From the NCBI GenBank assembly GCA_038496445.1, contig JALMLS010000399.1, forward strand, positions 1 to 43,775: a stretch of DNA of 43,775 nt, in the 5' to 3' direction. Below the pieces are notes generated by a model that saw nothing but the letters and a program-made list of their open reading frames with translations, did no database searches and was not told the origin of the DNA. This document shows positions 12,871-41,299 of the stretch, in pieces. Source of the DNA: Trichosphaerium sp. ATCC 40318. Lineage: Eukaryota > Protista > Tubulinea. A program made the position numbers and the translations under genes. Each line of letters begins with the position of its first letter. Within the stretch, counting starts at the first letter, position 1.

Positions 12871-15800
12871 TTAATTGTAATCGTCTTCCCATTCAATAAA
12901 TCCAATTCGTTTAACTTGTTTTGATTTACGCTTTTTGAGTGAAGGAGCCAAATGCTTGGATAGAATAACGGTACCATCTCTGTTAAAACCATCTATACCA
13001 TGACCAATAGCAAATGCAGGAGTATTGCGCTGTCTACGCTTAAAGAGCCACTCCTCTGAACCCACAGTACCATAATCCAAGGAAACTTGAGAACCATCCA
13101 ATCTTCTAACTATAGATACAGCAGTGACATTATCAAACCACGATGGTTTATCAAAAGATTCACGATCTATGGTCAAAGAAAGCCACTTGTAAAATCTAAG
13201 GCGTAACGTTTGAGCAGACATCCACTTGTACTTCGGGACATTATGTTTCACATCATTCCTTATAATCCACGTAAAAGCCATAATAGCACCTAAACAAAAC
13301 AAAGTAGCAGGTTTTTTACATTTGATTAAATTTTGCTCTGTCAAAGCAGGTACGTTAAATTCTTCTATGAGATCTGACAGTACATCTCTAATACTAGCAA
13401 CAACTTCCCAACTGTAGAATAGCTCCTCATGTTTTTCTGGAGGCATAGCATCTTTGACATGAGTCACAGGCATCACCCTCATTATCACTCTCCATATAAC
13501 ATCTCTGACATAATTCGCTGATTTAAGTTCTAACAATGCAGGCAAACAGGTACACTGATCTTTGATAGCAAACCACGAACGCTTCCAACGTGAAACTGAT
13601 TGAATGAGCTTGATTTTCATCACGTGTTTAAGCTTTCTAGGTTTAGCTTTGAGACTAACGTTTAAGGAACACCACACATCTCTGCACTTTTTACCTAAAT
13701 CTGTACCAACAAACCATACTTCCGAATAAAAAGTACCTTTGATCAAGTGCCTTTCCCACAATGTCGCTTTAAACCCAGTAGCTATCTGCGCTATAGAAAA
13801 AAGTTGTAAACCACCATTTTTGTAGCACTGATTCATGTGAGTCCAAGAGACACGTGATTTATGAATGCTGTGATTGTAAACGTATGAACTTTCCCAAAGA
13901 AACCAATTAATAATTGAATGATACCTAGGAACAAGGTGAACAGGAAAATCAAGTGCTCTAGCACAATCAGGTCTAAAATTCTCAAGCTGTTTTTATGGTA
14001 GATACCATGAATTTGTGGTATAATTATACCATTGATTACAATTTTATACCACAAATTCCAGTATAATATACCATAAATCAAAGGATTTATACCATAAAAC
14101 AGCCAAATTATACCATAAATATGCAGTAGAAAGTGCGAATTTATACCATATTTTTTCACCTGAAAAAATGCAATATATGGTATAATTCTACCATAAAACA
14201 TGGTATAAAACACAGTATAATACCACAAAGTCTGGTATATTATACCTTAAAACTTGGTAGATTATACCACAAAACCAAGTGTATTATACCGTGTAAAAAC
14301 TGTTCTAATAATAAAACCACATTTATTAATACATTTTTTTGTTTACATCCGTGACCTTTGGTTTTGTCCATATCCTCTTTTGTGGTAGTTGACACATCAA
14401 ATAACCTTCAAAAAAAATATTGTACTTGCTGTAAGTGCATCGAATGGACATAGCATGAAAACTAGAAGAAGAATTAGTGAAGGCTTGATGCACAAAATAA
14501 ATAGTCGTACAAAAATTGCTGTTTTGTTGTGGTGGCAGCACTGGAAGTAACAAATGACCTGTGTGGTGGAGCCAAACCAAGACTAAAACAAAGAAATGAA
14601 AATAACTGCCAACTTCATCGGAAACAAGTTCTAGCAGAATCGTACCTGTTAGTTAACACATCCTGGTTTTTTTTTTATCATCTATTTAGCTTGGTTAAAA
14701 CCTATGGCAAGCGGCTTCAAAACAACTACTTTTAGTGTACCTTGTGTTGTGTGGGCAATAAACTGGACAAGACTTAGTTTTGTGCTCTGACTTAGCCAAT
14801 TGGTTTACAATATCACTCGTAAGGTCAACACATGGGTGTGAAGCCTAAATGCTATCTGTTCTGGCAAATGCGGGCGTTTAGTAGGGAAAAATTCAAAAAA
14901 ATCCAAAAAAATCCAAAAAAAACCAAAAAACTCAAAAAATGGGTAGGCTCTGAAACAACTTGGCCTTATAGCACTATTCACGCGTTTTAACATGCATTGG
15001 AGCGTATATCAAAAATGTCAAAAAAAAATAAATAATTTTGCTCCTGATTTGGTAAATGAGGCTGTATGGCGTTGATTGAGTGTAAAAATGCCTATGGAGG
15101 GGAGAAAAAAATGAGAGCCGGGGAAAAAAACCTCCAATTGGAGGTTTTTTGCGAATGGGCATTTTTCAAGCGCTAAACGCGTTTTTGGTGTGTCTACCAC
15201 TGTAGCGTTCTAACATGGGGTACGTGGAGTGGTTTCTTCCTCAAATACTGTCAATCGGAGAAAATTGGCCAATTTATCCCTAAAACGCCCGCAATTGGGG
15301 CGCGTTACCAGATTTCTCTCTTAAAACTGTTTTTCACACATTTATATGCCAATTATGTTCAATAACGGCTACTGTCAAAGCATTGTGTGGTATGGCGTTT
15401 GCGTAGGGCCAAAGGCTATTAAATCAAGTATAGACCAAGTGAACTTTGACTAACTTATACTTATACGGTATAATACCACGGTATAATACCACATTTTATG
15501 GTATAATTATATGGTATAATGCACGGTATACAATACTGTAAAATACAGTATAATACCATGGTATAATACTGTGTTTTATGGTATAATTATATGGTATAAT
15601 GCATGGTATACTATACTTTAAAATGCAGTATAATACCATGGTATAATACTGTGTTTTATGGTATAATTATATGGTATAATTATGGATTATACTGAGCTTG
15701 TACCATAAAAGGTGATTATACCATAAAATACGGTATAATACCATGATAATTTTCAGACCTGTATTCGCTTGAAAACACTTTGAACTGTTAACAAAAAGAC

Positions 15801-17646
15801 CAGTAGCAAGCTTATATTTGTCTAAATACTTGTTAAGATAAACAATATCGTTTTTAGAGCTGGCATTCAGAATGAGATCGTCAGCAAAGAATAAATTCTT
15901 TACACAGACATTGCCAGGAAGTGTAACACCAGCAATTTTTGATACTTTGTTGATGAAAGAGTTGAGAGGTTCTACTATTAGAGCAAACAAATAAGGGCTG
16001 ATAGGATTGCCTTGACCTGTACCACGTTTTGTTGTAAAAGAGCCTTCACTGATGCTGTTGTTAATACGCACTTTAACATCAAGGCGCAGAGCATGTACAA
16101 TTGCCTCAGCAAACTCAGACTTGTACCCAATAAATTTTAATATATGGATCAATGCCAAATGACTACAAGAGTCAAAAGCCTTTCTGAAATCATACGCAAT
16201 AAGACTCAGCCACTTTAATTCTTTTTTACAAAAACTAATAACTTCTAGAGTTGTTATGAGATTGTCAACAATATCTCGCCCTGGTATGAATCCATTTTGT
16301 GATTCCAAAATGTATTTTTGCATGAATGGAGTCATACGGTTGTAAAATACTTTCATAAATATTTTATAGTCAACGTTTGCTAAAGTAATTGGACGGTAGT
16401 TACTCAAATCAGAAGCGTCTCCTTTTTTAAAGATAGGTACAATGATTCCCTTACACAGATGCTCATCAACCTCACCATTTTCAAGGAACAGATTGAATAG
16501 GTTAGCCAATATAGGAGCAAAAGTACCGCTCAATGATTTGTACAAGCACGCTGTTAAACCATCAGGCCCAAGAGCCTTGTTAATTGGGAGTTTTGCTATA
16601 ACCTTAGTAACTTCCTTGACAGTAATTTTTTTGTTAAGCTTATCCACAAACTTGTTATCACACGGAATGTCCCATTTGTTAATAAACGATTCAAGTACCT
16701 TTTCTTCAAAGCACTTGGAACTTCCTCAAACATAGCTTTTGTTGATGCCGCTAGATTATTAAGATGTTGGTTTTTTTCCTCACAAAGAAATTGATATGTT
16801 AAGAACTTCTTTTGTGTAATATCAGTACCATTTGCTAGTTGAGAAGCAATAAGTTCACAAGCTGTAATTTTGTTTTTTAATTCATCCTTTTGCGCTTCCT
16901 TTAAGATGTTGATCATCGCCTGTTTAGCAAAAAAGTAGTCGTCAACAGAGCGACCAAAATTCATCTCACAGATTATATTTTTGTTGTAAGAATTCCAGAA
17001 AACTTGATTTAGTTTAAAACTCTGCTCACTGCGTTTTGGAAAATTAAGTTCTAACAACATTAATTTATGATCTAAGTGAAAAAACCCAGTTGGAACAAGT
17101 TTAAAACTCTTCATGTGATTTTTAACATAGTCAGAAACAAAAATCATGTCTATTCTACCACCACGGTCATGGGTAGGATGAGACTTTTCAGTAAAAACAG
17201 CAACGTCAGAAAATCCTAATAAACAAATGTTTTCATAAATTTCTTTGTCCAAACTGTTTTTGTCAATACGTAAATTAACATCACCTGCTATTATGTCGCA
17301 TTGTGCCAAATCATCATAGACAGAATCCCAAAAAACACATTTGTTTTTGCAAGGTGCGTAAACAACACCTAAGAGAAACACCTGATGCTTGAACATCAAC
17401 AATTAATAAACGACCTTTTTGTTCATGCACAAGTTTCGATTGAGCTCCACGGAGTGTAGCAAGAGCGACCCCAGTACCTCTACCAGCATCTGTGTGTAAA
17501 ATACGTTTACTGTTAATATGAGAAGGGAATGAATTGGTTTCAGTAGCACAAAAGTAATTACACTTTAAATTAAATGAAAATTGTTTTAGGCGAAAGAAAT
17601 TTGAAAAACCTCTACTATTTACTACCGCTAGTTTGACTCTAGGCAT
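12871..17646 (-). pseudogene. LINE ORF2: AP-endonuclease, reverse transcriptase and C-terminal domain; frameshifted and interrupted
   Basis: MPRVKLAVVNSRGF...ATETN...YAP...IAGDVN...RIDMIFVS...DHK (APE); GPDGL, NYRPITL, QNGFIPGR, DFRKAFDS, GQGNPISPYLF, FADDL (RT); FLW...GGL...WIIRN in the C-terminal part. Frameshifts near 17390 and 16650-16710; insertion at 13968-15761. Confidence 0.93.
13968..15761. mobile_element. Non-autonomous TIR DNA transposon C nested in LINE ORF2
   Basis: Ends CAGGTCTAAAATTCTCA and reverse complement CAGGTCTGAAAATTATCA. TATACCA/TGGTATA subterminal arrays include three ~80-bp tandem units from 15466. No TSD is visible and the flanking ORF2 appears deleted. Confidence 0.8.
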
Positions 17647-18543
17647 TAGATGTTTTAGTCCTTGGATTATAAGAGTTACCTCTTTGTGTTGAGGTTTTTG
17701 CTTTCTTTCGTCTCGTATTATCATCTTTAGAAGTATCACGTGCTCTTTTGGCATTATCACGATATGAGGCAGCCTCCAAAGGAGAGAGCTTTGAAATATT
17801 TTGAGAATACCTTTGCACTTTTTCAAAATCACTTTCGGAGTTAAAAACCTTCATAACCAAAAATCCAGATCCACATTTGTATACCTGATATTGTTCCAAT
17901 CCAGTGAGTTTTTTTGAACATACGAAAACACACTGTTAGTGGGTAAATCACTAAATTTTGTATGCCATCTACGGAACATCAACATCCGTCCTCCAAATCC
18001 TAAACATATTCTATCACAAATAGTGCACATAGTCTCTTTGTCATCAAGAATGTCAAAACCTGATATAACAATCTTTATAGAGCCGTGAGCATAAATGTAA
18101 AATTTATATCTTTTGTCTCGAAAAATATCAATTTGTTTAGAAAATTGTGTATGTAAATTCTCCTTATTTTTTATGACCATGATAATTCTATTTGGATATT
18201 CTTTTGCAGTGATTATTTTAGAACTACCTTTGAAAGCATTAACTAGGTTCAAACGGTGGTCGTTGAATTCTTTTAGTTCGCCATTGGAAGAGTCTTCGTT
18301 GATTCCAAAATTTATAATCCAATAAAGCTCGTTGTTCATTTTATCAGCATTGTACCTCATAATCCGCTCTTCGGAGACTTTTTTGATACAATTCAAGATA
18401 ATGTTGTTGTCGATTTTTCGTTCTTCTACAGGAAACGTACTTGTAAGGTTTCGGACATCTTCAGCATCTTCCATATCAAAATCAGTAACACTTGAGTAAG
18501 AGGCTTCAGCCCCGCTGGTTATGGCAGTATCTTTCGGTTCCAT
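17639..18543 (-). CDS. LINE ORF1 (~300 aa; one apparent frameshift at the T-run near 17910)
   Basis: ORFs 17851-18543 and 17639-17899 join into one protein whose stop overlaps the ORF2 start region (ATG at 17646); position is typical of ORF1. Confidence 0.75.
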
Positions 18544-19144: not shown

Positions 19145-19954
19145 ATTTGTTGATAACAAAGTGCAGAGACGCAATACCGATCGAAAAAATATGCCTAGCA
19201 GAACTACCCAAACCAACGAAATACTGTAGCCTTACATATTTTCGCAGTATAACTCCATACTAGTACGTACGAGGGAAAACCAATCACGAGAGTGCTGTAG
19301 TTGAACCAAAACAAATAAAGCGGTAATTTGTAATATTAGTAGCGGTAAGACCGTGATAAGCCATCTTGCAAGGAGAATAGGCAAATAACCATCAACATAA
19401 TACTAAAAACGCTTTGTCGCATTTAATTCATTCTGGGCTTACCAGCTGTAAACACGTTTTAGCTTCTTGCTGAGTTTAAGATGTTGGCGTGGTCTTTGGT
19501 TTTGTCAAACTACACCTGGTGGTGTCGATACGCTCAGAAGTGGTGTGCTGTATTCACTAATCACTCTAAACACACAATCTATATTGTACGAAACCGGTTT
19601 TGGTGCCAAAATCCTTGAAAACTGTACGACATGCATCAGCTGATAACTTGCGGTTAGTACTGGCGGTGTTGGTTTTCCACTGGTACTGCAAACGAACAAA
19701 AATCAAACAGTACACTGGTTTTGGCATCGAAAATCTGATTGAATTCAAGCAACTAAAGAAGAGTTAGCAATCTGCCAATACACGCAAGACGTTCTTTGTG
19801 ATCTCCTTTTATTATTCCTGATTGAAAGATATCAATCAGATGGCCTGGTATCGGACTTTGGTTGAAAAGCGAAAACGACGAAATTACAGTATTTATTTCA
19901 TTATTTACAAACACAACAAAGTGAACAACAACAGCGAAAACAACTTCTCTAACA

Positions 19955-20445
19955 ATGAATCAAGCACACCAACGTATCGATAATGCTATAGTAGACTTGT
20001 TCGAGAATTTCTCTTCCGAAGCCTATGATAGATTGGGCAACGAACTAGAAGCCGAATACGACGTCAATATACCTGCCACAGCTGGAAGGAGTCGCCCTGC
20101 TAATCATTCGGCTGAAGCAATACAAGTCATGGAAGAATATCCTTACAACTCTTTATTTGGAAAAATCAATCATTTGAAATTTTTTGTTTTTTCTTTCTTC
20201 TTGTTTTAATCTTCACACATCGTTCTCCTTAACTCTTACTCACTTGGTATACACCTAACATACCTGAGCCATACCCTAAGTATCATGAGAAGCTCGTACT
20301 CGCAAGAGACTCTGGTCTAACTGTAGCACAAGTTAGTACTTGGTTTGCTAACATGCGCGCACGCCGTGGACACACCAGAACCAAAAAATGCACCGAGGAT
20401 TCAATAGCAGCCACTCAAACCGAAAGATTAGTCGATACTGAATAA
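19955..20445 (+). CDS. TALE homeodomain protein, short class (S1); exons 19955-20136 and 20244-20445
   Basis: Splicing the AT-AC intron gives ...[48 protein letters not shown] (PYP loop, WFxN). Confidence 0.88.
20137..20243 (+). other. U12-type (minor spliceosome) AT-AC intron
   Basis: 5' ATATCCTT, branch TCCTTAAC at 20226-20233, 3' AC 10 nt later; removal restores the homeodomain. Confidence 0.92.
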
Positions 20446-20917
20446 AAACAGTAGCATTGACGTAATTCAATAGTGAGATAGTATTATGTAATGCAAATAA
20501 ACTGACAGCTTGATATTCGCAACTCGTAGTAATTTTATTCTTTTTTTGGACTTTTTTTGTACCACTTTTTAAACTATCGCGTTCGGGTTTTAAACAACAG
20601 TTTGCCTTAGAATATTATCTAAAGCGTACCTTCGTAACCACTAGAAAGCGTAATCTGCTACGTTGATAGAATTCTAATTGATTAGTTCGAAATCAATCTA
20701 TTGCTCTCAACGGCTCTTATATTCGCCGCTATCAATCACCTCACGCTGTACCAACACTCTCAAACTACCACCAGATGATTGCTAAACACGGGCAAAAGCA
20801 ACTGTAGCTTTGAGAAAATACAACGCCGATAATCTTTCAGATTCTAATTTTATTCTTGACATACTATAATACATTTTCCAACATTACCAAAAATGGAACG
20901 CAGGAAGAAGTCTTAAA

Positions 20918-22583
20918 CTACAACAATGCTAAATGAAGCTGTAGGGATACTTCTTTGTTCTTTAACGATGTAGCTTTACCCAAAGCATCTCGTCCAACAG
21001 TTAAAATTTGTTCCCAATCATTAACAACAGCAGAAGCATGCGTTAAAGTATCGCCTAAAGCTTTAGAAGCGGTTATAAGCTTCTGTTGATCATCTATTAT
21101 CCTTGTAGACTTTTGAAGTAGAACACTCGCTTCTTCTAGCTTTGTTCTAACTTGTGGTTGATCTAGCTTAACATTATCACGAACTCTCATCATTTGAGCG
21201 ACTTGGTTCACTTTCACGCTCATTTTTTTGTATTTTTCGAGACAAGCCGTTAATTCCTTTTCAAATGAAAACAAGTTTGTGGCTTGCACAGAAACAATAG
21301 AGTCACCGAAAGCCTAAACGGAAACTCAGAGCGAACAAAAAAAAGACAAAGAGGATAAAAAAGAAGTGATTGATTTTACAGATCTGTAAATTCCTGCGGT
21401 TGTTGGTACTGAAAACTCACCTTTTGTTTGCTGTTTTCCAGTTCAGTAGATTGTTTTTTGAGCTGTGTACGAAGTTGTGAAACATTCTTTGATACAGCGT
21501 AAATTTCACCCTAGGGAATCGTGTCAGCGTGCACAATTAGTTCGTAAGAGTCGTACGAGCGTATTTGCTGTATTCGCTTTTTTGGCGATTGCTGCATTTT
21601 TGTTCATGAGTTGCCATTGAAGGAGTTGGGTTTGTAGAAGCTCTATACGCTTCATTTTGGTGTCCTTAGACTTTTCCATTCCCATTCGGACTCGCTACAA
21701 AAAAAATAAATAAACATTCTAAAAACAAGTTGTTCCGGGCTTCTACACGAACAGAAAAAATAGAAAAAAATGCCACGCTATGCACATCATATTAATGTAC
21801 TCATAGAAAACTTTTGAGCTTCAAACGATTTGATACAAACGCGCGAAAAATCGGTAAATAAAAATAGCATTTTAAATCCGAACGTACTGTCGTTAACTTT
21901 GAACGTTGCGGTTTGTTTTGTGCTGGTTTGGTAGTAGTATTGACTCTACGCTTTCTTACAACAGGAGTTTTTGTAAGAAAAGCTCTGGCCTGATTTCTCG
22001 CATTTTCACTTGCAAACGCGCTATTTCGTACTGGTTTGCGCTTCTTCATCGAAGAACGAAGCGTACCAGCTACTACCGGCTTTGGCTTTCGTTTGTGGGC
22101 CCAGTCACCTGTATGGTGGCCGTGAGTCGTCATTTCAAAGCTTTGATTTTAACGTACGTGTTATCATCGTTGCGCGTCTTCCATTTGGCGCTGGTTGGCG
22201 TTTTTGAAGAGCAGCAGGAAGCATTGTAGCTCTTCGTGTTTGTAGTGGCGGAAGTTGAGTAAGTGGCTTCCTGGTTTTCTTTGTGGTTGATGATGGCTGC
22301 ATATAACGCGAAGCAACATGTTTAACTACAATTCAGCGTGAGCAATTTTACCGTTATTCTTTCTTTACCTCTTCTACGTTTCGCTGTAGACGGTGCTGCA
22401 GTGCGTTTTGGTACAGTTTTTCGGTTATACGGCGTCTCAAGCAGAATATCATCAGTAGGTAGCCGTCGTTGCTTTTTTGCTAATAAATATAAGGTTTGAA
22501 GGTGGTTTTATTAGCGTTTTACTTGTTGAGCTAAATAATCGCTTTTGAACTGATCCAAATGGCGTTTGCGAAGACAGAGACAT
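20918..22583 (-). CDS. Multi-exon gene of unknown function: basic low-complexity N-terminal part and coiled-coil C-terminal part
   Basis: ATG 22583, several GT-AG introns (e.g. 22480-22522), exon ORFs 21801-22133 and 20918-21289 (heptad-like). Exon structure is not fully resolved. Confidence 0.5.
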
Positions 22584-22748
22584 GATACAATCAACGCGGG
22601 AAACAAATCAAGTGGTGTTTTCAAACGAAGTCATTTTTTTTTTTGTACATTGGTTTATTGACGCATAGGCAGCCCATTTACATTTTTATGAGTATCATAG
22701 TACTCGTACAAGTAAGTGATGAGCTAGTGTCGTCGCACGTGAAGAATT

Positions 22749-23288
22749 TTACTCTTCTTCAGTCTTTTTAGCGCGTTTAGCGGTCTGTTGCCTTTCCAGT
22801 TCTTCCTGGGCCTTGCGTATCTTGTAGGCCTTCTTGGTATCGCCACGGCGACGGCGGGTGTTGGTGAACCATACGCTCACTTGAGAGACTGATAGTCCTG
22901 TAGTTGTAGCAAGTTCTTCTTTGACGTCAGTTTCTGGGTATGGCAGAGGTAGATGAGCTTGGTACCATGTACGTTAGAGTTAAGGAGGAGAAGATTGAAA
23001 AAGCAGAAAAATGATTGATTAAAAAGGATATAAGTCCATGGTAGCAATAGCATCAGCGTTGTGGTTTGCGGGGCGGTTATTACCAGTTATTGGAGGAATT
23101 CTAACGTCGTAGTTGTTTTCGTGGTCCTGTCTAATGGTTGGGGAGTAATCGTTTAGGTCTTGACCGTCAAGTAGCCCAGTCACTAAATGATCAACATCAG
23201 ACTCTATCATCGCTAATTTTTGCAATCCTTTGCGAACTGCTTCGTTTTCGAGAGTGTTTTGCGGTTGTTGTTGTTGAGATGCTGCCAT
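22749..23288 (-). CDS. TALE homeodomain protein, short class (S2); exons 23288-23032 and 22968-22749
   Basis: Spliced product ...AIATMDLWYQAHLPLPYPETDVKEELATTTGLSVSQVSVWFTNTRRRRGDT. Confidence 0.9.
22969..23031 (-). other. U12-type AT-AC intron (63 nt)
   Basis: 5' ATATCCTTT, branch TCCTTAAC (22986-22979), 3' AC 10 nt later; same codon position and phase 2 as the S1 intron. Confidence 0.92.
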
Positions 23289-23751
23289 TGTTGTTGAAAG
23301 TTGTTTTTATGCAAGTTATGCCGATAAAACTTTGGCATGAAAAGTCTCTAATCACTCAACAAGTTGTACCTGAATAAAAATTATGGGCACAGCCTAACGG
23401 AGGCAGTATTTAGACGCTTGTTGAGTGTTTTCAAACCTTTCTACTTTTGGAGAAAACATATTTCGAGTTATTACACCTCTAGTTAGGGTCGTGTACGTAT
23501 TCTGAGACAGACGCGCGCATTTCCGTAATTTGCTTTAAAATAAAATAAATGATTGATACCGTAAAATCTCATATTCCAGTCTTATCTACCTTACGCGTTA
23601 GTATAAACTTGTAGGAGTAAAAAACGAGTTTGAAGAGAAACCGGGATTGTCGCCAAATTTGGAGACTTTGGGTGGTAGACTTTCACATTCAAATTCATCT
23701 ATCTATCATTCGTAATCCATCAACAACTCGTCAACGACTCTTAAACGAAAA

Positions 23752-25144
23752 ATGGCTGAACGCACCGAAGATACCGCTCGTATTAATGAAGAAGTACTCA
23801 ATCTGGCAAAAGCCTTCCAAAAATCTGTAATAATCACTCCAAAACAACCAATTCCCGAAGTTGTACCCCAGATAACAAAAGATGAAGTATTTGCAATGTT
23901 TGCCGAGCATATAACCAGCGAACTCATGGTTCAAAAAGTTACTTGGTTATTCTCGCAATACGTTAACGCTCTTACGCAACTTGAAGCCATCGTAAATACC
24001 AAGGTTGAAAACCTATCACGTGAGCTATCCAGCCCAGCTATGGTTGCGTTGATTCCAAGCGAATTGAAGAAATTGAAATTGCACATCGTTTCAATCGAAT
24101 ACAACTCAGTACGCCTTAAATACCAGGAGAGACTTGCCAGAGCTATTACTCAAGCAATTGAATATCAACGCACTCTTCCTGAGCAAACTAGACGAATTCC
24201 TCCTCGCGCGCACAGAATTCTTACCAATTGGCTCTTTGTACACGCTGCAGTACGTATATTTGTTTCTTTCGTTCAACCTTTGTTATGATTGATACTAATT
24301 ATTGTCATAGAATCCTTATCCAACCGAGGCCGAGAGACAGAAGCTTGGCTATGTTTGCAACTTGAAATGGGCTCGAGTCAAGACATGGTTCAACAACAAC
24401 AGGAATCGTCGCCGTGAAGATTTGGCTGCATGGCTTGTTGCACGTGGTGTTGTACCAGTTCCAAACGCTCAAGGTCGTCGCAAAAGAAATCGTGCTGCTG
24501 CACCTGGGCGTACACCTGTAGCCATGCCTGCTCGTGCGCCTGTAGCCACTCCTGCGCGTGCACCTGTAGCTGTACCTGGGGGCGCACCTGTAGCCAGACC
24601 TGCTCGTAAACCTGTAGCATCTCCTTCACATAGCGCCACTCCAGCTACCCCTCAGCGTAGACCTAATCTGAAGAAGATTAAGAAAGAGAAGAATTACACC
24701 GAGAAAACACCAACCACAACTCCAGCTAATCAATCAAATGTACACTCAATGCCACCTTCGCCAGCTGTCAACAACGCTGTCAATACAGTCTTTCCAATGA
24801 CAAGTACGCTTGTTTTTACTACTCTCTAAGCCTTTCTTACTTGCTTAGCTACGTTTCCACCCGCCATTCTCACTGCTCCAGTCCTAGATGATGCGTTCAT
24901 CAAAACTGAAACCAATTTTCTAAACCATGGAATGATAACTGATGGAGAGGAACCAATGGAACTTGAGCTACCTATATTTCAAGACCCTCCCGAAATGCTA
25001 TTTAGCCCGATGGGAGAACTCGTAGTATCTGACGAGATGCTCCTTGACACTGATGATATCATCGACCACAGTTTTGGTGAACTTGTAACTGGTTTCTTAA
25101 ACGAGATGGCAGACCAATTTGTCTTTCGTGATCCTAAACCATAA
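23752..25144 (+). CDS. TALE homeodomain protein, long PBC-like class (L1); introns 24250-24310 and 24804-24848
   Basis: Spliced ILTNWLFVHAA-NPYPTEAERQKLGYVCNLKWARVKTWFNNNRNRRR; helical N-domain, Pro-rich linker, acidic C-terminus. Confidence 0.9.
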
Positions 25145-25706
25145 GTTAGTTTTTTGGAGTATATTCCTGTGACACAGAAATAAAATCAAACTCAATATAT
25201 ATCTTGTTTATGTGCTTGTACCACTTTCCTCGTCTCTTATATAGCCTTATAGCACCTTAAGATCTGTTGATTCCGCTAAAGTAATTGCCGTTTGCACGTA
25301 TGAGATGGATTCGGTGATGATTGATTCAAGATTGATTTTTAACATAATCTTTATCGAAATACGCCCAGAACATCGAATAGTGTACGTAGAGTTCATGTAG
25401 ATGAGTTTTAAAAGTTTCTGGAAAGAAACTTTCGAACGTTACCAAATATGGAGAAGACGTTGGTGAGGACTCGCTTTATGAACTAAAAAATGAATATAAA
25501 GTGTTATATCACCGTGTAAAAGTTCTATCAATGGTTGTAAAGTGATATCAATCAACGTACGTAAGTTTTCGTGGATATTTGTAAAAAAAAATCTATCAAA
25601 ACCAATCAACACTGAAAACGAATTTGGCCACAAAACTTTTTACACTCAAATACAGTCAAATAAAAATCATTCCAACATCATCAAACAACAACAACAGCAC
25701 CTCAAC

Positions 25707-27145
25707 ATGGCCGAAAACAATCCAAAAGACCGTTCTAGTACCAAACAAAGCGAAGTTGATGAGTTGACTAAGCTTTTCGCTTCTGCAATGTACATCCAAT
25801 CACCTGATGGTGTCGACATTGTGAAACAACTCACGAAACAAGAAGTATTCAACAGATTCGAGAACAAGATTACAACCGACTTGCTCATCGAAAAAGTATC
25901 ATGGCTGTACTCTCAATATGTCATCTCTTTAGTCCGTCTCGAGACTATTCTCAGTAGACATCAACAAGTAGTAAAACAAGAGCTATCTAAAGATCAAGTG
26001 GTATCTACAATGACTCCAGAATCGATAAAGAAGCATATTCAACTTCTAAATATAGCATGTAATCGTGCAAGACTTGTGTATCAACAACAACTCTTCTTGT
26101 CAATTGTGAGTACAATTGAACGTCAAGCAAGTCTTCCAGCAGGCACAAGAAAGATTCCATCACGTGCCAAGAGAATCCTCACCAACTGGTTATTTGAACA
26201 CGCCACTGTACGTATATTTTACACAGCTGTTCAGTATCAAATAGTTGATACTCACCTTTGTTTTAGAACCCTTATCCAACTCAAGCTGAACGTGAAAAGT
26301 TGGCTTTCATTTGTGATATGAAATGTGCTAGAGTCAAGACTTGGTTCAACAACAACCGCAATCGCCGTCGTGAAGATTTGGAGAACTGGATTGATCAGCA
26401 AAACCTCGCAGAAAACCATGTGCCAAGACGTAGAAGGAACCAACGTAGGCGCAACCCAAACCCTCGACCAGCCAACCCAGTGGCTATTCCTACCCTACCA
26501 GCTCCAGCTACTATTCTTGCCGCCCCAACTCGCCAAGTCAAGCCACCAGTAACTATTCCTACTCCACGTACACGCGCAGCTGTTCCATGTTGTCCTAAAA
26601 TCAAAAAAGAACCTAAAAAAGTTCAACGATCATCAACTTCTCCTTCACCTCATCCACCATGTATTCTAGCGCCAACACTTCCCTGTATCAGATCTATAAC
26701 TGCTTTCAATGCCCTGGCTCATCCAATACCTTTAGTGAACAACGAGACTGTACCTCAACCAACCTTAGGTACGTCTTAGAGAAACCTGCATCCGAAATAT
26801 TTGCTAACTCTTTGCATAGTTGAAGTGAAGCGTGAAGAAGTACTATGTGCTCCAACGGACAGATACTGCTTCTCAATAATTAACACTTTTCTCACCAGTG
26901 GTATGGATGGTCCAGATGACGAAGATGTGTCAGGCTTAGCGCCAGTTTATGGCTCATTGCCAGTGATGACAATCGATCCATTTGGAATACTCTCTCAAGG
27001 AACCGTTCCTCATTTATCAACTGAAGGTCTATCCTCAGAGAACGCTGAACAAACTGTAGACGCTTTCGTTAATTCTGTAGCGGATAACTTTGTTCTTAAA
27101 GGATTTGAGGATTCCTTGGATGAAATGGATGAAGATAAAAAGTGA
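25707..27145 (+). CDS. TALE homeodomain protein, long class (L2); introns 26208-26266 and 26769-26819
   Basis: ILTNWLFEHAT-NPYPTQAEREKLAFICDMKCARVKTWFNNNRNRRR; same exon structure as L1. Confidence 0.9.
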
Positions 27146-27485
27146 AAGTTCGATTAACGTAACTGCAAAATCTGCAGTGAGCATAAAAGTAATAAATATC
27201 AAGTTTGTATTCACTTCTTTCTTTGCTTTAACGTTCTGTGATAAACCACTTGCTAAAATTGAACGTATCAACGCACTATCGACGCTCAAGTCACGTTTTG
27301 AAAGCGAATTTAGCAGATTTGTTATTTTATGTTTAAAAACCTCTGTAGCGTCATTTGCGCTTTATCTAATGAATTAAAATAGGTTGTGAAGTTTTCAGTA
27401 TTCGCCATATTAGGAATATTCCTGTAAGTCAACAAAACGTACACAAAACAACTCAATCAGCTTGCAATCGCTCTAATATCAATCA

Positions 27486-28778
27486 ATGACAACATCTATC
27501 AACTCTAGCACTAAAATCGATAAAGGCGTTGCTGAACTAGCTAATTACTTTACAAAAACAAGTTTTATCCAATCTCCAGTCGAAGTAGAACTTGTTAAAC
27601 AACTTAGCAAACAACAAGTATTTAATTACTTTAAACCTTTAATAACAGACAAAATACTAGATGAGAAGGTATCTTGGTTGTACTCTCAGTACGTAGTATC
27701 ACTTCGACGGCTTGAAACAAGTGTGATTAAAAGCCAAGAGAAATTTGCACGTGAACTCTCCCAAACACCCTCATTATTAGCTCACAGTTCAACATTCCGT
27801 TATGCTCAAGTACATTTCATATCAGTAGAGTGCAATGAGATGAGGACAAAATATCAAGAACAACTATTCTCAGCAATAGAATTCACACATGATCGCTATT
27901 CGAAACTCCCTATTAGAAAATCCAGACGTTTTCCTAAACGTGCTCTACGTATCCTGACACACTGGCTGTTTGAAAATGCTGCAGTAAGTAATGCCCTTTC
28001 TAATGTCTTATGATACTTACATCATGTACAGGATACTCACCCAACCTTCGAAGAGATCCATAAGCTAGCCTTTGTTTGTGATTTGGAATGTGCTCAGGTA
28101 AAGAGATGGATAATAAACAACGCTATACGTAGAAAAGAAGATTTGACAACTTTTATGCAAGAGAAAGAAGCTAGGGAGAATAAACAACTGCTGGAGAAAA
28201 ATAAGAACACAGCTACTAGTAGACCGGATTCTTTTATTCAATTTCCTAGTCAAACAATCGAACTGCAACATAGCAAACATCAAACTATAGACCTTCCTGT
28301 ACATCTTGCGTCAAAAGATAAGGAATATGAGGTTCCTCTAGTACCACCACGTGTTCAGCACGTAAATCATAGTGATAGTATGCTGATGCAAGATGCAAAC
28401 ACAAATTCGCAATCTCTTGACAACGAAACAGGTACATACCACAGCAGCTGTTTGTTAACAATACACTGACTATTTTTAGCGCCAGTATCTCTAGATCAAG
28501 GTGACTTAGGTGTTTCTTGGCCTGTATTACAACAAAATGACATAGTTCTAAACAATGATTGGGCAACAGATGACAACTCAGGTTTTTGGAACAAGCTTGA
28601 GACCAATGAAGCAGAACACGAAATCTTTTGGGAAGATCAATTGAACAATAGCACAACAGCAGAGCCAGTATATATGGAGTTTACTATGGGTGATATGCTC
28701 CTATCAGATCCACTCTATACAACACCAGAACCAGAATTTCTTGTATTAGGCTATAGTGGCGAAGTACTTAGTCTATAA
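27486..28778 (+). CDS. Long-class TALE paralogue with a degenerate recognition helix (L3); introns 27984-28031 and 28432-28479
   Basis: KVSWLYSQYV N-domain intact; homeodomain ILTHWLFENAA-DTHPT...QVKRWIINNAIRR; spliced ORF open to TAA at 28778. Confidence 0.85.
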
Positions 28779-29226
28779 TTGTAAACATACAATGATCATT
28801 TCAATACAATACTTAGCTGCCTTTATCTACATATTTCTTTCATTCTTAAGTGTACTGTTCTAGCAATACTAACCTTTAGAGACTCGAAAAGTGATACATC
28901 AATCGTTCTGGTACGGCAACTGTTCGAAAATGTAACAAGCTTGTTTCTCGAACTGGTTGTTTATGTAGGCTTGTGTTGTAGATAAATGTCATTTTTGATG
29001 TAAATCAATATTGGTATCGTTGTATCAACGATTTACAATGCTAGACATTGGCGTGGTACACGTGATTCAAGAAAGTTTTATTGACATAAAGGAAAGCAAC
29101 AATCTAGGTTTACACAAAGGATAATATCTAATGTTTTCGAAATGCAAAGTGGGTAATTAACAAGACAATCTTAAATTCAACCAGTTGTTTTATTGGAATA
29201 TTTGACAAACAGATCCCAGTATGAAG

Positions 29227-30553
29227 TTACTCTTCTTTGATCTCTTTTTCTTCAGAATTCATTGCATCATAGAAAGGTTGATAGCCACAACTATCAAGCA
29301 CAAAGTCATCAACAACGGTAGTTAGGAAAGACTCGACTTTAATCTCAGCGTTTTCAGCTGTAAAGTCATCGATCGGTAGCTGAGGAACGGTAGCATCAGG
29401 TAAGGTTCCAAATGGTTCGAGCATCATCAAGTTATGTCCATACGCTGGTGACATATCAGTCATTTCTTCGTCATCTGAATAATCAATGCCGTAGGTGAGA
29501 AAGTTGTTGTTCATGAAGGACTGTCTATTAGTTTGTGTAGCGATTGGTTTCTCTTCTTTTACTTCAACTAGGAAAAGAGTGAGTCGTAAAAAGTACACGT
29601 GATTTTAATACGTACCAAAAGTTGGCTGAGGTGCAGCGTTGCTGTTTACGACAGGTACTGGAGACGTAGGAGATGCAGTAGCCGCTACAGTATTGGTTTG
29701 GAGAGTAGTTGGTGGAACAGGAGCAGCTACTGGTGTTGGCGGATTGGCTGGAATCAGTGCAGGAGCAGCCGTTGGAGCTGGAGGGTTGGCTGGTCGAGGG
29801 TTTGGATTGCGCCTACGTTGGTCCCCTCTGCGTGTTGGCACTGGGTTTGGTACGAGGTTGTTTTGATCAATCCAGTTCACCAAAGCTTCACGACGACGAT
29901 TACGGTTGTTGTTGAACCAAGTCTTGACTCTCGCACATGTCATATCACAAATGAAAGCCAACTTTTCACGTTCAGCTTGAGTTGGATAAGGGTTCTAAAA
30001 CAAACGTGAGTGTCAAATATTTGAGACAGAATAACTTGTAAAATATGCGTACAGTGGCGTGTTCAAATAACCAGTTGGTGAGGATTCTCTTGGCACGTGA
30101 TGGAATCTTTCTTGTGCCTGCTGGAAGACGTGCTTGACGTTCGATTGTGCTCACAATTGACAAGAAGAGTTGTTGTTGATACACAAGTCTTGCACGATTA
30201 CATGCTGTATTTAGAAGTTGAATATGCTTCTTTATCGATTCTGGAGTCATTGTAGATACCACTTGATCTTTGGATAGCTCTTGTTTTACTGCTTCCTGGT
30301 TTCTACTAAGAGTAGTCTCAAGACGGACCAAAGAGATTACATATTGAGAGTACAGCCATGATACTTTTTCGACAAGAATAGCGGAAGTAATCTCGTTCGC
30401 GAATCTGTTGAATACTTCTTGTCTTGTGAGTTGTTTCACAATGTCGACACCATCAGGTGATTGGATGTACATTGCAGAAGCGAAAAGCTTAGTCAAGTCA
30501 TCAACTTCGCTTTGTTTGGTACTAGAACGGTCTTTTGGATTGTTTTCGGCCAT
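29227..30553 (-). CDS. TALE homeodomain protein, long class (L4), inverted paralogue of L2; introns 30052-29995 and 29615-29568
   Basis: Near-identical to L2 in the N-terminus and homeodomain (WFNNNRNRRR); diverged linker and C-terminus. Confidence 0.9.
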
Positions 30554-31291
30554 GTTGAGGTGTTGTTGTTGTTGTTTGATGATATTGGAATGATATTTAT
30601 TTGACTGTATTTGAGTGCAAAAAGTTTCGTGGCCAAATTCGTTTTCAGTGTTGATTGGTTTTGATAGATTTTTTTTACAAATATCCACGAAAACTTACGT
30701 ACGTTGATTGATATCACTTTATATTCATTTTTTAGTTCATAAAGCGAGTCTTCACCAACTCTTCTCCATATTTGGTAACGTTCGAAAGTCTCTTTCCAGA
30801 AACTTTTAAAACTCATCTACATGAACTCTACGTACACTTTTCGATAATTCCGGGCGTATTTTGACAAAGAAAATGTTAAAAATCAATCTTGAACCAATCA
30901 TCACGGAATCCATTTCTAATTTCATAAGCGTGACTATAGAACTCGGTATTATGCTCATATCCCGTTTTAACTATTAAAACTAACTGTTTACGGGTTTCTG
31001 CTTTAATTTTAGAAAAGTAAATAGCAGCCTATTTAAACTGTATAACTAGGCGCCATATTTGAGGTTATAGCTATTCTACGCGATTGCTAAGCACTAAACA
31101 CGTTTCCGACCGAAATTTGTTAATGTTACAACCAATTTTAATAATTATAACCTACAACGTCTTATCCACGTATAGTATGTATCCGGGTTTGTATTTTCAG
31201 TTTTCGCCTAATTAGGAATAGAGAAGTAAAAGTTTTAGTGTACGTTGAGAGAAACTACTCAATCAACACGCTTTCAAGCTCTCAACAACCA

Positions 31292-32507
31292 ATGAACAAA
31301 TCTACCAACAAACCAAAGCGTAAAGACCAGGATATTGTAGAATTGACTAAAAGTTTTCAATCATCTGTTACTATTAGTCCTACACGCGCAAATGGAATTG
31401 TAAGACAATTGAAGAAAGAAGAAGTATTAGAAACGTTTAAAGGGCATATAACGAGCAAAATACTTGAAGAGAAGGTCTCTTGGTTGTATTCTCAGTATGT
31501 GAAAGAGCTAGTGCGTATGGAGACATTGATAAAGAAGAGCCAAGATGAAACAGCACGTGAACTGTCTGAATCATCTATCGGTGTAGCTTTATCAAAAAAA
31601 GACAAACAAAAGCAACTGGAACTGTTGAGTTTACAGTGCAACAAAATTAGAGTTCTCAAACAAGAGCGATTATTCAAAGCCATCGTCTTTACATTGGACA
31701 GACACGCTAAGCTGCCCAAACAAACAGGAAGACTGCACCCTGAACGTGCTATACGTATTCTAACACACTGGCTATTTACAAATGCAGCTGTACATACACA
31801 ACAAAGCAATTCTTTTTCAAGCAAAAAAACACTTGTTTCTCACTTTGTATTTAGGATCCTCACCCAACCACAGAAGAGGTCGCAGAACTCGCTTTTGCAT
31901 GTGATTTGAAACGCTGTCAGGTAAAGAGGCGGATAACTACAAATGCACGTAACCGAAAGCCCGACTTGGAGGTCTTTCTTGATCCAACCAAAAAAAAGGA
32001 GGAAGAAAAAAAGCCGGTCATCAGTACAAATACTGAAGCTATTGAGCGTTGTATTGTGCCACCAACAAAAGTAGAGACTATAATCAAAGAGATAGTAGTT
32101 GAGCCTTGTATGCCAACATCTCCACAGCGAACAGTTATCAAAATACAACCAGAAACGGACATTTTACCTGAACAGAATTCGTGTAACAAATCAACTCTAA
32201 CTCATCCAGAACAAAGCAAACAACAAGGTACAAAATATAAGTACTCTTCTTTTATTAACAGTTGTTCTAAGATAAACAGGTCTCATTTAGTGTAGACTCA
32301 ATAGTGTACGATAGTTCTTGGGATACACTTGAAACAGAACAAAACAATGCTTTGTTTTGGGAACGTCAAAATGACACATTGACAGAAATGTCAAATGATT
32401 CCTTCGCATCTACAACGTATGAATTTAACTGTATGGGCACGCAATACATCTCAGACATACTGGAATTCCCTATACTAGACTATAACGAAGACCTAGAAGA
32501 TTTGTAA
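31292..32507 (+). CDS. Long-class TALE paralogue with a degenerate recognition helix (L5); introns 31790-31854 and 32228-~32295
   Basis: KVSWLYSQYV N-domain; ILTHWLFTNAA-DPHPT...QVKRRITTNARNR; the second acceptor is ambiguous (32271 or 32295). Confidence 0.83.
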
Positions 32508-33453
32508 TCCGTTCCAAATAAAAAAACCACACCATATTTTGATTCGGATTCGGAAGATAGCCGCGTAGAAAAGGCTTATTCTAGGTTTTTGCAGAATTTT
32601 ACTTCATCGTCGCTTGTTTCGGTCTAGATTTGGTTTATTGAGTTTAAAACAGTATAACAATCGTAACACGTCCTGAATCACACGTCTCGTCTACGACAAT
32701 GATTTAAACACAAAACCTGCGGTGAATTTTTGTTTAACTCACCAATCCCGCCCTTGTTTCCAACAATGCGTGCCACACCATAATGAACTGTATTTCAGCT
32801 GGAAAGAGCGTAGTAAAATTCCAAAACAAGCAAGTTCTGAACTGTGCATTTTACGTTCTTACCACACTTGAAACGAGATAACCATACGCCATTAAAACAT
32901 TATACAAAGCTTTTAAGCGTATTATACTATTGGCAAAAAAAAAAAGAATACGAAGCTAACAAACCTCGCTTGCTATTATTCACATGATGTAAAACTACGC
33001 GATTATTGACCAATGCGAGTCTTTAAAATACTTCAAATATTATTTTGAATGTACTAACACTACAGATCTGTAACAAACTCACACTTATTAATTGAACTCT
33101 TATCAACGATCTAAAGATTGATTTTTATTTGTCAGAATAAACAGAATTCGGGTAAAGTTTGAGACAGTGAGTGAAAAAATCTTTCGATCTTAAACTTTCA
33201 AAAACCAAAACATCTTCTTTGGCTATTTGAAAGCTTCTAAGGCCGCCTCTGATTATGATTGATAAGTACTTTTAATTGAAATAAAAACACTCCCTTACGC
33301 TCGGATATACTACATTTATTGACATAGCATGGTTGGAATTGTAAATGGACGTACAACCAAATTAGGATGAATGAATTTTCGAGTTTTTTAGCCTAATATA
33401 TCATTATCAACCAAACGTACAAGCTCAACAACAACTCCTCAATCAAGAATACC

Positions 33454-34737
33454 ATGACAGAAACCACCTCTATGAATAACAAAGCATTCAATCAACAACT
33501 AGAAAACGTAGCTGCAAAGACTAAAAGCCTTACTCTAAGTCAGCTAAACAACAACTCCATCACTCCTCCGATCTCTAGACCAGCTTTCTTCCAAAAGTTC
33601 AACCAAGCAGTAAACGGAAACCTTTCTCTCGAGAAGCTATCATTCCTTTACGATAGATACGTCTTAGCGCTAGAAGACCTCGAAAGTCAAGTAACTAAAC
33701 AAGTTGCAAAACTTGAGCGCGTTCTTACAACTCCACCAGCATCGAACTTTATCAACGAAGCAACACGTGTTCAAAAGCTCAATTCTCTCTCTGCTAAATT
33801 CAATACTGTTCGTGTTGCTCAACAAACAAAGTTGTTTCAACTTGCTGCTAAGGCAATCGAACGTTGTGCTCTTATCCCAACATCAAGAAACCTCTCACCA
33901 CGTGCAAAGAGAATTCTAACCCACTGGCTCTTCCAAAATGTTAACGTACGTCCTTTTCTCTATCTCGCTTTGTCTATTTTAGTATCGCCTATCAATCACT
34001 CACTTTACGTTTAGAATCCTTGTCCAACTGACGCTCAAGTGCAAACTCTTGCTTACGTATGTGACATCGAACAAGTGAAAGTAAAAAACTGGTTCAACAA
34101 CAACAGACATCGACGCTCAGAGGACCTTAGAACCTTCCGTGTAAACAACGGTATCGCTCCTAATGCTCCCACACGCGTAGTACAACCATGTGATAACGAG
34201 AAATCGACCGCTCCTCCTAACCGCAAAATTCTTCGTGCCAATCGTGTCAAACCTGCTACCAACAAAGCAGCAACACCAACGCCAGTACCAATGCAAGTGC
34301 CTATCGTGATTAAAGATGAACCAAAAGAAACAGCGCCTAAATCTCCTCCTGCCACCCTCCCTCTCATTCTGCCTTCTCCAGTGATCAGCGGCCCAGCTGA
34401 AGTGCAACCTGTCGAAAGTACGTCTTTTATAAACAAACAGTTTCTGTTGTTTGACATAATTCTTACTTTGTTTTTTGCTATAGTTACTGTTCTCGAAGAA
34501 GGCTTTTCGGCTCCAGTTATTGACTTGGATGGTTCCGCTTACTTTCCAGAAGGCGAGGATTTTCTCACAACTGGTATGATCGAAGAATATCAGCCATTTG
34601 GCAGCTTTGGTTTTCTGAATGCAGGAAATAACATGGATGCTGCGGGCACAGAAGTTGCCCCTGTCTCTGATACGATGTTTATGAACGGAATGGTGGATGA
34701 ATACGTTTTCAATGAAGACTCTCCTCAAGATCTCTAA
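33454..34737 (+). CDS. TALE homeodomain protein, long class (L6); introns 33946-34014 and 34418-34483
   Basis: KLSFLYDRYV N-domain; ILTHWLFQNVN-NPCPTDAQVQTLAYVCDIEQVKVKNWFNNNRHRR. Confidence 0.88.
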
Positions 34738-35262
34738 AGAACAATATCACACAATACCTCGTAACGACTTGTCTCAATAAAATGTCACTTTTTATGATTG
34801 TTACAATTTGTTTGCCCTTGGTTTATGCCGATAATGACACCAATATTACTTATTGAGTTTGTTATGTGCCTTGATTGATTTCCGCGCTTCAAATTTTGAA
34901 ATGTAGCGCTTGTTACAATTTGGCTGAAAGTATGTTCCTGTTATCGAGCTAAACTGCCCTGACACTTACTTCTACGCATGTAGAGCGTAATAAAGTGATG
35001 TATAACGTAAAGTAAAGCAAAATAAATAAATAAAAAGAATTCGTACTAAAACTACATGCAGTTGTACAAGCAGACATTTCTATCCACACAGTTTTCCAAA
35101 TCTAGAAAGAGTAGAAGATGTATGTTTCATCAATCAGGTAGTGTTATCGCTCTGTTAAACCGCATTGCCTTTAGAACCACTCCTGTTAGTACTTTTCGGA
35201 ACATACAGCGTAAGTATACTAATTTCGGCAAGTACTTTTGGGTTGTTATTTTAGATGGCCTA

Positions 35263-39678: not shown

Positions 39679-40531
39679 TCATTTAGGTGTTCGCAAAAGC
39701 AAGCAGCGGCCGCTTTGGTACGTTTGGCTGTTATTTTTGTAAACTTAAGCTTCTTAAGTTAAAATGAGAAAGGGAGAAGATAGGGCGATATACTGCACTC
39801 GTTTTTGTAGTGGCAATAAAATCAGACAGGCATGTAGTCAAAATTATGAGAATACGTACCAGATGTCGCTTTGTGTCCTTTGGCTACGATAGCTATACTT
39901 TATCGTGTAACGACACGATCACTCACCGATCCCTAGCTTGTTGTCTTTCTTGTATTTTTTTGGGCATAAAGTCGTGATAGACATTTGTGATAGCGTATTG
40001 TGTTTTATTTGCTGGGATACAGATAAGAAAACGAGAAAGTTGATTTGCCAACAGCGACCGCTTAAGGGTACTTAAGTGTAGACAACACGCCATTTTCACG
40101 TTGCTTCAATGATAAATCGAGTACCACAGGTGCAGTATTATGACAAAATCCGAATTTTCCCAAAAAGGTAATTGATACTTGAGCCGTAGTTGTCGAAATG
40201 ATTTGTGAAACTACTTTTCTCATGATATGACGGATATACACATAACCACATTAGCTCGGATAAAAACTTTATGCGCAACCGCGGTAATACTAGTTCACCC
40301 GTCGACAAAAGGAGAAGTTCAAGCCCAAAAAACTCCGCAACACGTTGCTATATTCATGAGATAACAAGTTCGCTAGATCCAAGTAAATACAATTACTTCT
40401 GTGTAAAGTTAGTTGCAACACAGACTTTTTCCTAATTTTGTTGGAAAACGGCACAAAAAGGAGAGACGTAGATAAAGGGAGGTGCATTTATTGTACAGTT
40501 ATTTTGTTTATTCTGTTGTTTTCTTTTCTTT

Positions 40532-41299
40532 TTAGTCTACAGATACTTTTGTTCGGTTCTTATGTATTGGTGTATTGGTGTACCCTTGTCCCCAAACGTA
40601 GTATTGAGGTGATGATAAAATAACGGGGTTGAACTGTTTTTTATCATCTACGCTTTGACGGTTTTGCGTAGCAACATGCATTGGTGGTAATCTTGCTAAT
40701 GGAGGGAGAATATCATATTGGGTATGTGTACGTTGAGGACAACAGTTGATTACCATATTAGGTGTTGAGCCAGTAGATAGCTTTAAGACGCCCTGACTGA
40801 TTAGACTAGCAATAGAAGGTAGTATTGGTTTATAAAAGCAAACCTTTGACTCCAATTTCCATCTATACAAGATTAGCAAAACCTTTTCATATCCCTCCGA
40901 TTTTGGATTTGACGTACTTGTCTTGTGAAATAAGCTTAGTATTGTGCGTTGATGATGCTTTTTTCTTTGTTGGTTTAGCATGATTATGGTCATGGATGTA
41001 GCAAACGTCTCTATAACATCAGTATCTGACGTATTTCCAAGCAGAAAAAGTAGCAAGTAGACGCACATAAAAGTGTTGTTTTCGCTGTTTTGTTGAACGT
41101 GTTTCTTCGCTGGGCAAGAGCGTAGAGCGCAACGATAGTACGTGCGCTTATTCTGTGATGCTTTGAGTACGCGATTGCCAATGTTACGCCACTTCCAACC
41201 GTCGCAAGTTGTCTTGTATTCAGCGCGTACTTGTAGCATACGCATGTTTGTAGAATTGTATTCAAAAGAGCCTCTCATCTGTCTTGTTTGATTATTCAT
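40532..41299 (-). CDS. Variant WRKY-domain transcription factor; introns 41066-41011 and 40917-40863
   Basis: DGWKWRNIGNRVLKASQNKRTYYRCALRSCPAKKHVQ; after splicing the zinc finger is complete, C-X4-C-X23-H-X-H (…YIHDHNH). Confidence 0.85.
   Translation of the reverse strand: MNNQTRQMRGSFEYNSTNMRMLQVRAEYKTTCDGWKWRNIGNRVLKASQNKRTYYRCALRSCPAKKHVQQNSENNTFMCVYLLLFLLGNTSDTDVIETFATSMTIIMLNQQRKKHHQRTILSLFHKTSTSNPKSEGYEKVLLILYRWKLESKVCFYKPILPSIASLISQGVLKLSTGSTPNMVINCCPQRTHTQYDILPPLARLPPMHVATQNRQSVDDKKQFNPVILSSPQYYVWGQGYTNTPIHKNRTKVSVD

Follow-up and report, generated by a model that had tools for sequence, protein, structure and literature searches.

Does the helical domain in front of the homeodomain of the long-class homeobox proteins of Trichosphaerium sp. 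ATCC 40318 descend from PBC-B, the second half of the Pfam PBC family (PF03792) of animal PBX proteins, and do these proteins belong to the PBC class, as an earlier note on this DNA had proposed from an alignment with PBX1? The genes are carried by contig JALMLS010000399.1 (assembly GCA_038496445.1), which was analysed over a stretch of 43,775 nucleotides (positions 1 to 43,775 of the forward strand, called the window here). Ten homeobox genes of two classes, long (L) and short (S), were located between 19.9 and 36.8 kb. A TALE homeodomain (with a three-residue loop extension) is present in the L class, and the TALE model Homeobox_KN was matched by the L class and the S class alike. The six long-class genes, L1 to L6, are a lineage-specific, tandemly expanded TALE family with a conserved N-terminal antiparallel two-helix hairpin. 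As judged from its sequence, this hairpin is read here as a PBC-B-like (PBL-type) domain and a true remote homologue of PBC-B, with a probability of about 0.5.

TALE heterodimers (PBX-MEIS, KNOX-BELL and GSP1-GSM1) are traced back to the last eukaryotic common ancestor, and control of the switch from haploid to diploid is ascribed to them. The Amoebozoa have been thinly sampled for such heterodimers, being represented essentially by one Acanthamoeba protein that did not dimerise in vitro. If derived from PBC-B, the L class would add to this protein a second, far richer case from the Amoebozoa (six paralogues, an adjacent second TALE class and candidate sites) and a system for testing the PBC-B hairpin as an ancient dimerisation surface; if the likeness is convergent, the hairpin would be an ordinary lineage-specific helical domain.

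Gene structure and predicted hairpin of the L class

Exon 1 of L1 (23752-24249, forward strand) encodes a variable N-terminus, the hairpin, and the arm and helix 1 of the homeodomain, with WLFVHAA as its last residues. A 61-nt intron of phase 0 (24250-24310, forward strand, GTACGT...AG) was predicted from the sequence in the TALE loop between residues b and c, and the start of exon 2 (24311-24420, forward strand) encodes the remaining TALE homeodomain, NPYP...WFNNNRNRRR (Homeobox_KN, 1.2e-7; Homeodomain, 2.5e-7). Splicing at these positions would restore WLFxHAA / NPYP across the intron, exon 2 beginning with NPYPTE. Predicted introns restoring NPYP or NPCP were located in L1, L2, L4 and L6, and a GT donor stands at the same place in L3 and L5.

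The hairpin of L1 was assigned to residues 55-142 (23914-24177, forward strand) according to the AlphaFold helices and the register-specific similarity described below. Those of the paralogues are residues 56-143 of L2 (25872-26135, forward), 54-142 of L3 (27645-27911, forward; with 1 extra residue ahead of the homeodomain), 56-143 of L4 (30125-30388, reverse), 54-142 of L5 (31451-31717, forward) and 54-140 of L6 (33613-33873, forward). Identity of exon 1 to that of L1 ranges from 31 to 41% across the paralogues, and the core common to all six is EKVSWLYSQYV.SL.RLE ... N..R...Q..L, with K62, L66, Y70, L74, E78, L92, N118, R121 and Q125 (L1 numbering) invariant. The gapless alignment of L1 with PBX1, claimed by the earlier note at 23932-24200 and up to the homeodomain, was right in coordinates and frame; it is colinear with the homeodomain and extends from K62 to homeodomain position 8, which is I149 (K62-I149 being encoded by 23935-24198).

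AlphaFold models were obtained for L1 (predicted local distance difference test, pLDDT, 71.5), with predicted helices at residues 57-92 and 103-141 and homeodomain helix 1 at 151-165, and for a real PBX (pLDDT 78), with helices at 87-130 and 138-182 and homeodomain helix 1 at 186-198. At a gapless offset of 35 residues, the starts of helix 2 are aligned (103 and 138), the proline-containing loops are opposed and homeodomain helix 1 coincides. The hairpin is thereby modelled as a helix of about 36 residues, a proline-containing loop of about 10 residues and a second helix of about 39 residues leading directly into the homeodomain.

L2 (25542-27145, forward strand) and L4 (29227-30688, reverse strand) are inverted near-duplicates, with 94% nucleotide identity in exon 1 and matches in the upstream open reading frame (ORF) text and the C-terminal acidic exon as well; the arrangement looks like the product of a recent duplication that placed a segment, in inverted orientation, on either side of L3. 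Between them, the ratio of non-synonymous to synonymous substitution rates (dN/dS) of the hairpin is 0.25 (12 synonymous and 11 non-synonymous changes), and the hairpin is therefore under purifying selection; the ratio for the variable first 55 residues is about 1, from few changes. L3 and L5 retain the N-terminal hairpin despite degenerate recognition helices, in which KRWIINNAIRRK (L3, 28083-28130) and KRRITTNARNRK (L5, 31906-31950) replace KTWFNNNRNRRR.

PBC references and anchored score

PBC references were collected by scanning a metagenome collection with a back-translated PBX helix-3 motif. Among the 120 loci obtained, 44 were ORFs resembling complementary DNA, with a single frame spanning PBC-A, PBC-B and the homeodomain; the two most vertebrate-like loci (references L020 and L077) were excluded, and contigs with the homeodomain exon alone were not used. 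Two alignments were built from 38 distinct metazoan metatranscriptome sequences, one of PBC-B with homeodomain helix 1 (A2) and the other from PBC-A to the homeodomain (A3), and these matched Pfam PBC at E=5e-69 and 1.7e-57. The length of PBC-B is exactly 88 residues, with no indels, in 38/38 references, the most divergent ones included (L071, L066, L013 and L011, with 59-78% identity to the others from PBC-A to the homeodomain), which suggests that indels are not tolerated in PBC-B across the sampled animals.

The similarity of the L profile to PBC-B was scored on the diagonal colinear with the homeodomain, without gaps, over 88 columns, as a profile-profile expectation under BLOSUM62. The null consisted of the 113 remaining diagonals with full overlap, taken in both the forward and the reversed orientation. 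A circular-shift null for global hhalign was also tried and was discarded as invalid, the gapped alignment recovering the true diagonal for the larger block.

Homeodomain-anchored similarity to PBC-B

The anchored gapless score of the L profile against PBC-B was +4.0, with null diagonals at -62 +/- 16 and the best of them at -14.6 (z 4.1), and shuffling of the 88 facing columns gave P=2e-5. The hydrophobic pattern, which the earlier note had described as kept, was indeed correlated between the two families at 0.49 (rank 1; null maximum 0.36 forward and 0.40 reversed). When the L sequences were scored singly, the correct register was ranked first of 77-80 in all six, at -6 to +27.6 (the highest being L5) versus -60 +/- 20. 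The maximum among 2249 windows of other proteins encoded in the same DNA was -5.8, which was exceeded by L2, L4 and L5 and marginally by L1 and L6, L3 (-6.0) falling just short; short-class S4, whose stretch upstream of the homeodomain was anchored in the same way as a control, scored -61.

The two helices were also scored apart. Helix 1 (PBC-B columns 1-41) was ranked 3/104 on the same diagonal, with 3/207 null diagonals as high, and helix 2 (columns 49-88) scored +8.4 versus -27 +/- 10.6 (rank 1/105), with 0/209 null diagonals as high. In the reciprocal scan, in which each of 40 PBX ORFs was searched with the L profile (about 263 windows per ORF), the PBC-B window came first in 40/40 (z 3.6-5.4). 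The K motif is separated from homeodomain position 1 by 88, 88, 89, 88, 89 and 87 residues in L1 to L6, respectively, versus the invariant 88 of PBC-B. The top hhalign alignment (L1 62-123 with PBC-B 8-69, 62 columns, ungapped) lies on the homeodomain-colinear diagonal, in the register that the earlier note had given.

Two short motifs match in register, K-x3-[IL]-x3-Y-x3-L and [FYC]-N-x-[IV]-[QR]-[VL], the better match being KFNTVRV of L6, which lies exactly opposite the real PBC consensus KFNSIQV; the earlier note had placed it at KFSSIQM of PBX1. The PBX1 fragments of that note agree with the consensus of the 38 real PBC-B domains, and the identities claimed for L1 amount to 10/53 positions at that register, the four fragments being the best-matching parts. 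PBC-B columns common to both families are K8, Y16, L20, L38 and R84, with K8, Y16, L20 and L38 identical and conserved in both.

These results bear on the alternative that the amphipathic helices form a lineage-specific domain with no relation to PBC-B, the likeness being convergent or generic and not inherited, a reading that we regard as quite possible without favouring it. Under convergence, the best of about 230 diagonals would have to fall by chance on the homeodomain-colinear one, and independently so for both helices; the spacing of 88 +/- 1 residues, the same loop position and the in-register motifs would have to arise as well, and the reciprocal scan was unanimous. The signal lies mainly in the buried face, patterned as in a hairpin of the same geometry, and in the two short motifs, and unrelated hairpins of equal size could share such a pattern: with shuffles that keep the hydrophobic/polar pattern, the residue-level excess has a P value of only 0.013, as convergence would lead one to expect. 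As a case of method, Pfam, HMMER and hhalign all miss a similarity that becomes clear once the alignment is anchored on the adjacent homeodomain.

Standard homology and fold searches

The results of the standard searches weigh against descent from PBC-B and are for the most part what convergence would predict. The comparison with Pfam PBC by HMMER and profile-profile alignment, which the earlier note had put forward as its check, did not bear the proposal out. Scanning of the six L exon-1 proteins against Pfam at E<=10 returned noise only, with no PBC, MEIS, KNOX or POX match, and the six-sequence L profile had 0 matches at E<=1e-3 among 1.84 billion representative proteins, neither PBX nor AcPbx (the Pbx protein of Acanthamoeba) being recovered. 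Unfiltered scores of the PBC-B hidden Markov model (HMM) against the L N-domains were 0.3-7.2 bits, with L1 at 7.2 forward and 6.1 reversed, and only L1 (P=0.0085) and L5 (P=0.045) stood out from their own shuffles (2000 for each sequence), P being 0.04 or more in the five proteins other than L1. By hhalign, the L N-domain scored 17.3 against PBC-B (P=0.029, probability 1.7%), and the reversed controls scored higher (18.9 with L reversed, 18.6 with PBC-B reversed); global-mode hhalign gave no outlier. With homeodomain helix 1 added, the hhalign probability was 9.1% (P=0.0036). The concern that a generic coiled coil might score equally well was thus borne out for the local profile scores, but not for the anchored gapless score.

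At the level of residues, the identity of L to PBC-B is 9-12/88 (about 11-14%), where other registers average 5.5-5.9 and reach 11.8, and the two consensus sequences have 9/88 residues in common. The conserved columns of the two families do not coincide (r=-0.006), and the PBC invariants C27, F30, H33, L37, R45-P46, F63 and C75 are replaced in the L proteins. Fold searches of the Atlas and the PDB with the L1 model returned generic helical hairpins only; the Atlas contains a PBX cluster, found by the PBX model at a template modelling (TM) score of 0.59, and this cluster was absent among the neighbours of the L1 model. To the same side belong the composition of the reference set, which is metazoan only and of low diversity, and the short-class neighbours, in which no MEIS or KNOX Pfam domain was found.

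Two word-indexed homologue searches were also performed. The L2 ORF gave 70 candidates, none of which scored, and the S4 homeodomain gave no candidate with three common words. A feature-based search of the ESM Atlas likewise yielded nothing of use.

PBC-class membership

The proposal of PBC-class TALE proteins has to be divided. A PBC-B-like domain is suggested by the single register and the matching predicted helices, and that part of the proposal is kept; class membership is not demonstrated, since three features that define it, a PF03792 match, PBC-A and the PBC homeodomain signature, were tested and all failed. The PBC-A HMM scored no higher than 0.3 bits against the L proteins (P>=0.04), none being found, and hhalign of the L N-domain against PBC-A gave P=0.34. 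The homeodomain signature of the class (Gly50, WFGNKRIRYKK and LSNPYPSEE) was not found in the L class, in which WFNNNRNRRR (Asn50) and HAANPYPT stand instead; 38/38 PBC homeodomains are invariant for NWFGNKRIRYKK, a motif by which the references were selected. The intron of the L genes, between TALE-loop residues b and c, also differs in position from those described in PBC genes (AcPbx a[1/2], PMC6219170). True class membership of the L proteins, as orthologues of PBX and Exd, is consistent with the same anchored similarity that suggests a PBC-B-like domain and with the enrichment of TGAT-type sites in the cluster; given the three failed features and the intron position, we consider it very unlikely.

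Comparison with known systems

The earlier note had also implied that a PBC-type domain outside animals would be new, which was overstated (PMC6219170, PMC3957477): such domains have been published, and the L class at most adds to them a new member that is divergent and expanded. PBL (PBC-B-like) domains were defined in algal TALEs by Joo et al. 2018 (PMC6219170), who listed PBC-B-bearing TALEs for Acanthamoeba, Guillardia, Naegleria, Apusozoa, Ichthyosporea and choanoflagellates. In the same work, TALE heterodimerisation outside animals is described as mediated by PBC-B/PBL domains, and TALE dimers as controlling the haploid-to-diploid switch in algae and plants.

The PBC-B of animal PBX, Extradenticle and CEH-20 is placed directly N-terminal to the TALE homeodomain, as the L hairpin is, with 88 versus 87-89 residues; both consist of a helix, a proline-containing loop and a helix, with the start of helix 2 aligned, r=0.49 and two motifs in register. 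Unlike L, animal PBX has PBC-A in front and a GNKRIRYKK homeodomain, whereas L has N50, no Pfam PBC match and low identity.

A close pattern is that of Acanthamoeba castellanii AcPbx (XP_004342337). Hudry et al. 2014 (PMC3957477) showed that this protein is without PBC-A and that its homeodomain has diverged strongly, and they saw no dimerisation with AcMeis in vitro. By analogy, the L class fits this amoebozoan pattern of a PBC-B-like domain only, joined to a divergent homeodomain. An intron lies within the TALE loop in both, at a[1/2] in AcPbx (supplement of PMC6219170) and at b/c, phase 0, in L, which are near but not identical positions. Compared by eye only, a fragment of AcPbx PBC-B is identical to L2 at 12/70 positions in the same gapless register, including K-V..L...Y...L..L. 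AcPbx differs from L in being recognised by Pfam PBC, in keeping HVM.LL and TRPIT, and in being a single protein of 537 residues with a long low-complexity N-terminus, whereas L is a six-gene cluster.

The PBL domains of algal non-KNOX TALEs (PBX-Red, PBX-Glauco and GLX/GSP1) are likewise weakly conserved PBC-B-like helices beside a TALE homeodomain, the likeness to L being drawn from their description. They were defined by ad hoc similarity of low significance and proposed as a heterodimerisation surface, and the TALE proteins with which they pair have KNOX/MEIS domains, unlike the short class at the L cluster. The place of the MEINOX-type motif in the first helix of PBL domains corresponds in L to columns 1-41, with their rank of 3/104 and the conserved K8, Y16, L20 and L38; the match of columns 49-88, although first in rank, is not significant by local profile methods.

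Proposed function

Most likely, the L hairpin descends with great divergence from the ancient hairpin through which TALE proteins dimerise, AcPbx being a comparable case. Because the L hairpin sits at the PBC-B/PBL/BELL-type position, is conserved under selection and is amphipathic, we infer a role in protein interaction, most likely TALE-TALE dimerisation, by which an L protein would be paired with a second TALE protein and the dimer would bind composite DNA sites. The partner may be one of the neighbouring short-class proteins, which are candidates since S2 and L1, the sole head-to-head L-S pair, share a divergent promoter region of 460 bp.

The target of such a dimer may be the TGATTGAT motifs concentrated in the cluster. 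All 16 exact sites of the 43.8-kb window are inside the homeobox cluster (19831-35136), where 2.9 were expected, and a count of 16 was reached in 0/100 shuffles. Several of them closely precede L and S genes, and a single one, at 24286, is within the L1 homeobox intron. This concentration is circumstantially consistent with autoregulation by TGAT-binding TALE proteins.

Two wider interpretations of the cluster were considered. In the first, the hairpin would be a true descendant of an ancestral PBC-B/MEINOX dimerisation domain, its exact length kept for more than 1 billion years with almost all residues changed, and L and S would form an expanded amoebozoan TALE heterodimer switch, wired to itself via TGATTGAT and controlling a cryptic sexual or life-cycle transition; we consider the whole of this unlikely. 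The second draws on basidiomycete HD1/HD2 (bE/bW), which resemble L in their helical N-terminal domains before the homeodomains and in their clustered, partly head-to-head and multi-paralogue loci. By this analogy, the hairpin would be a self/non-self recognition module in which the surfaces of the paralogues set the L-S pairs, within a cluster that would switch the mating type or the life cycle. The presence of both homeobox classes side by side with one head-to-head S2-L1 pair, the large number of paralogues whose first 55 residues vary (dN/dS about 1 between L2 and L4, against 0.25 in the hairpin, from few changes), the autoregulatory-looking TGATTGAT sites and the published control of the algal and plant switch by TALE dimers (PMC6219170) are in keeping with such a module. 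L and S are both TALE, unlike HD1/HD2, in which the HD2 homeodomain is typical (non-TALE); there is no sequence relation, only one L-S pair is divergent, and a module of this type appears rather improbable here. It concerns function and is compatible with either origin of the hairpin, inheritance from PBC-B or convergence.

Other features of the window

Besides the hairpin, an acidic/hydrophobic C-terminal block (...F[VL]N.[MV][AV]D.[FY]V[FL]...) is common to the L proteins and is encoded by a separate last exon (24932-25144, 26801-27145, 29227-29598 on the reverse strand, and 34500-34737). This block may be an activation domain.

The window is AT-rich eukaryotic DNA with a content of guanine plus cytosine of 36-41%, and its genes other than the homeobox genes are of the F-box/LRR, reverse-transcriptase element, WRKY-domain and RING/zf-UBP types. 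F-box/LRR_6 genes occupy 0.2-7.5 kb. A retroelement of the type without long terminal repeats (15667-18543, reverse strand; RVT_1 E=9e-26), with upstream ORFs, lies directly 5' of the homeobox cluster. A multi-exon gene for a protein with RING-H2, zf-UBP (E=1.4e-24) and a C-terminal coiled coil is at 37204-39700 on the reverse strand; it resembles, as we presume, an E3 ligase of the BRAP2/IMP type. A gene with a WRKY DNA-binding domain (PF03106, E=5.5e-13) is at 40532-41299 on the reverse strand; WRKY domains are unusual outside plants, being confined there to a few protist and fungal lineages. This gene and the introns of about 60 nt speak against an animal source of the DNA. At the window edge (43507-43754), a short-class-like N-terminus close to that of S4 was observed over two frames (MTLAERQ... 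in one of them), and this is a copy with a frameshift or else a gene that is split by an intron and runs past the end of the window.

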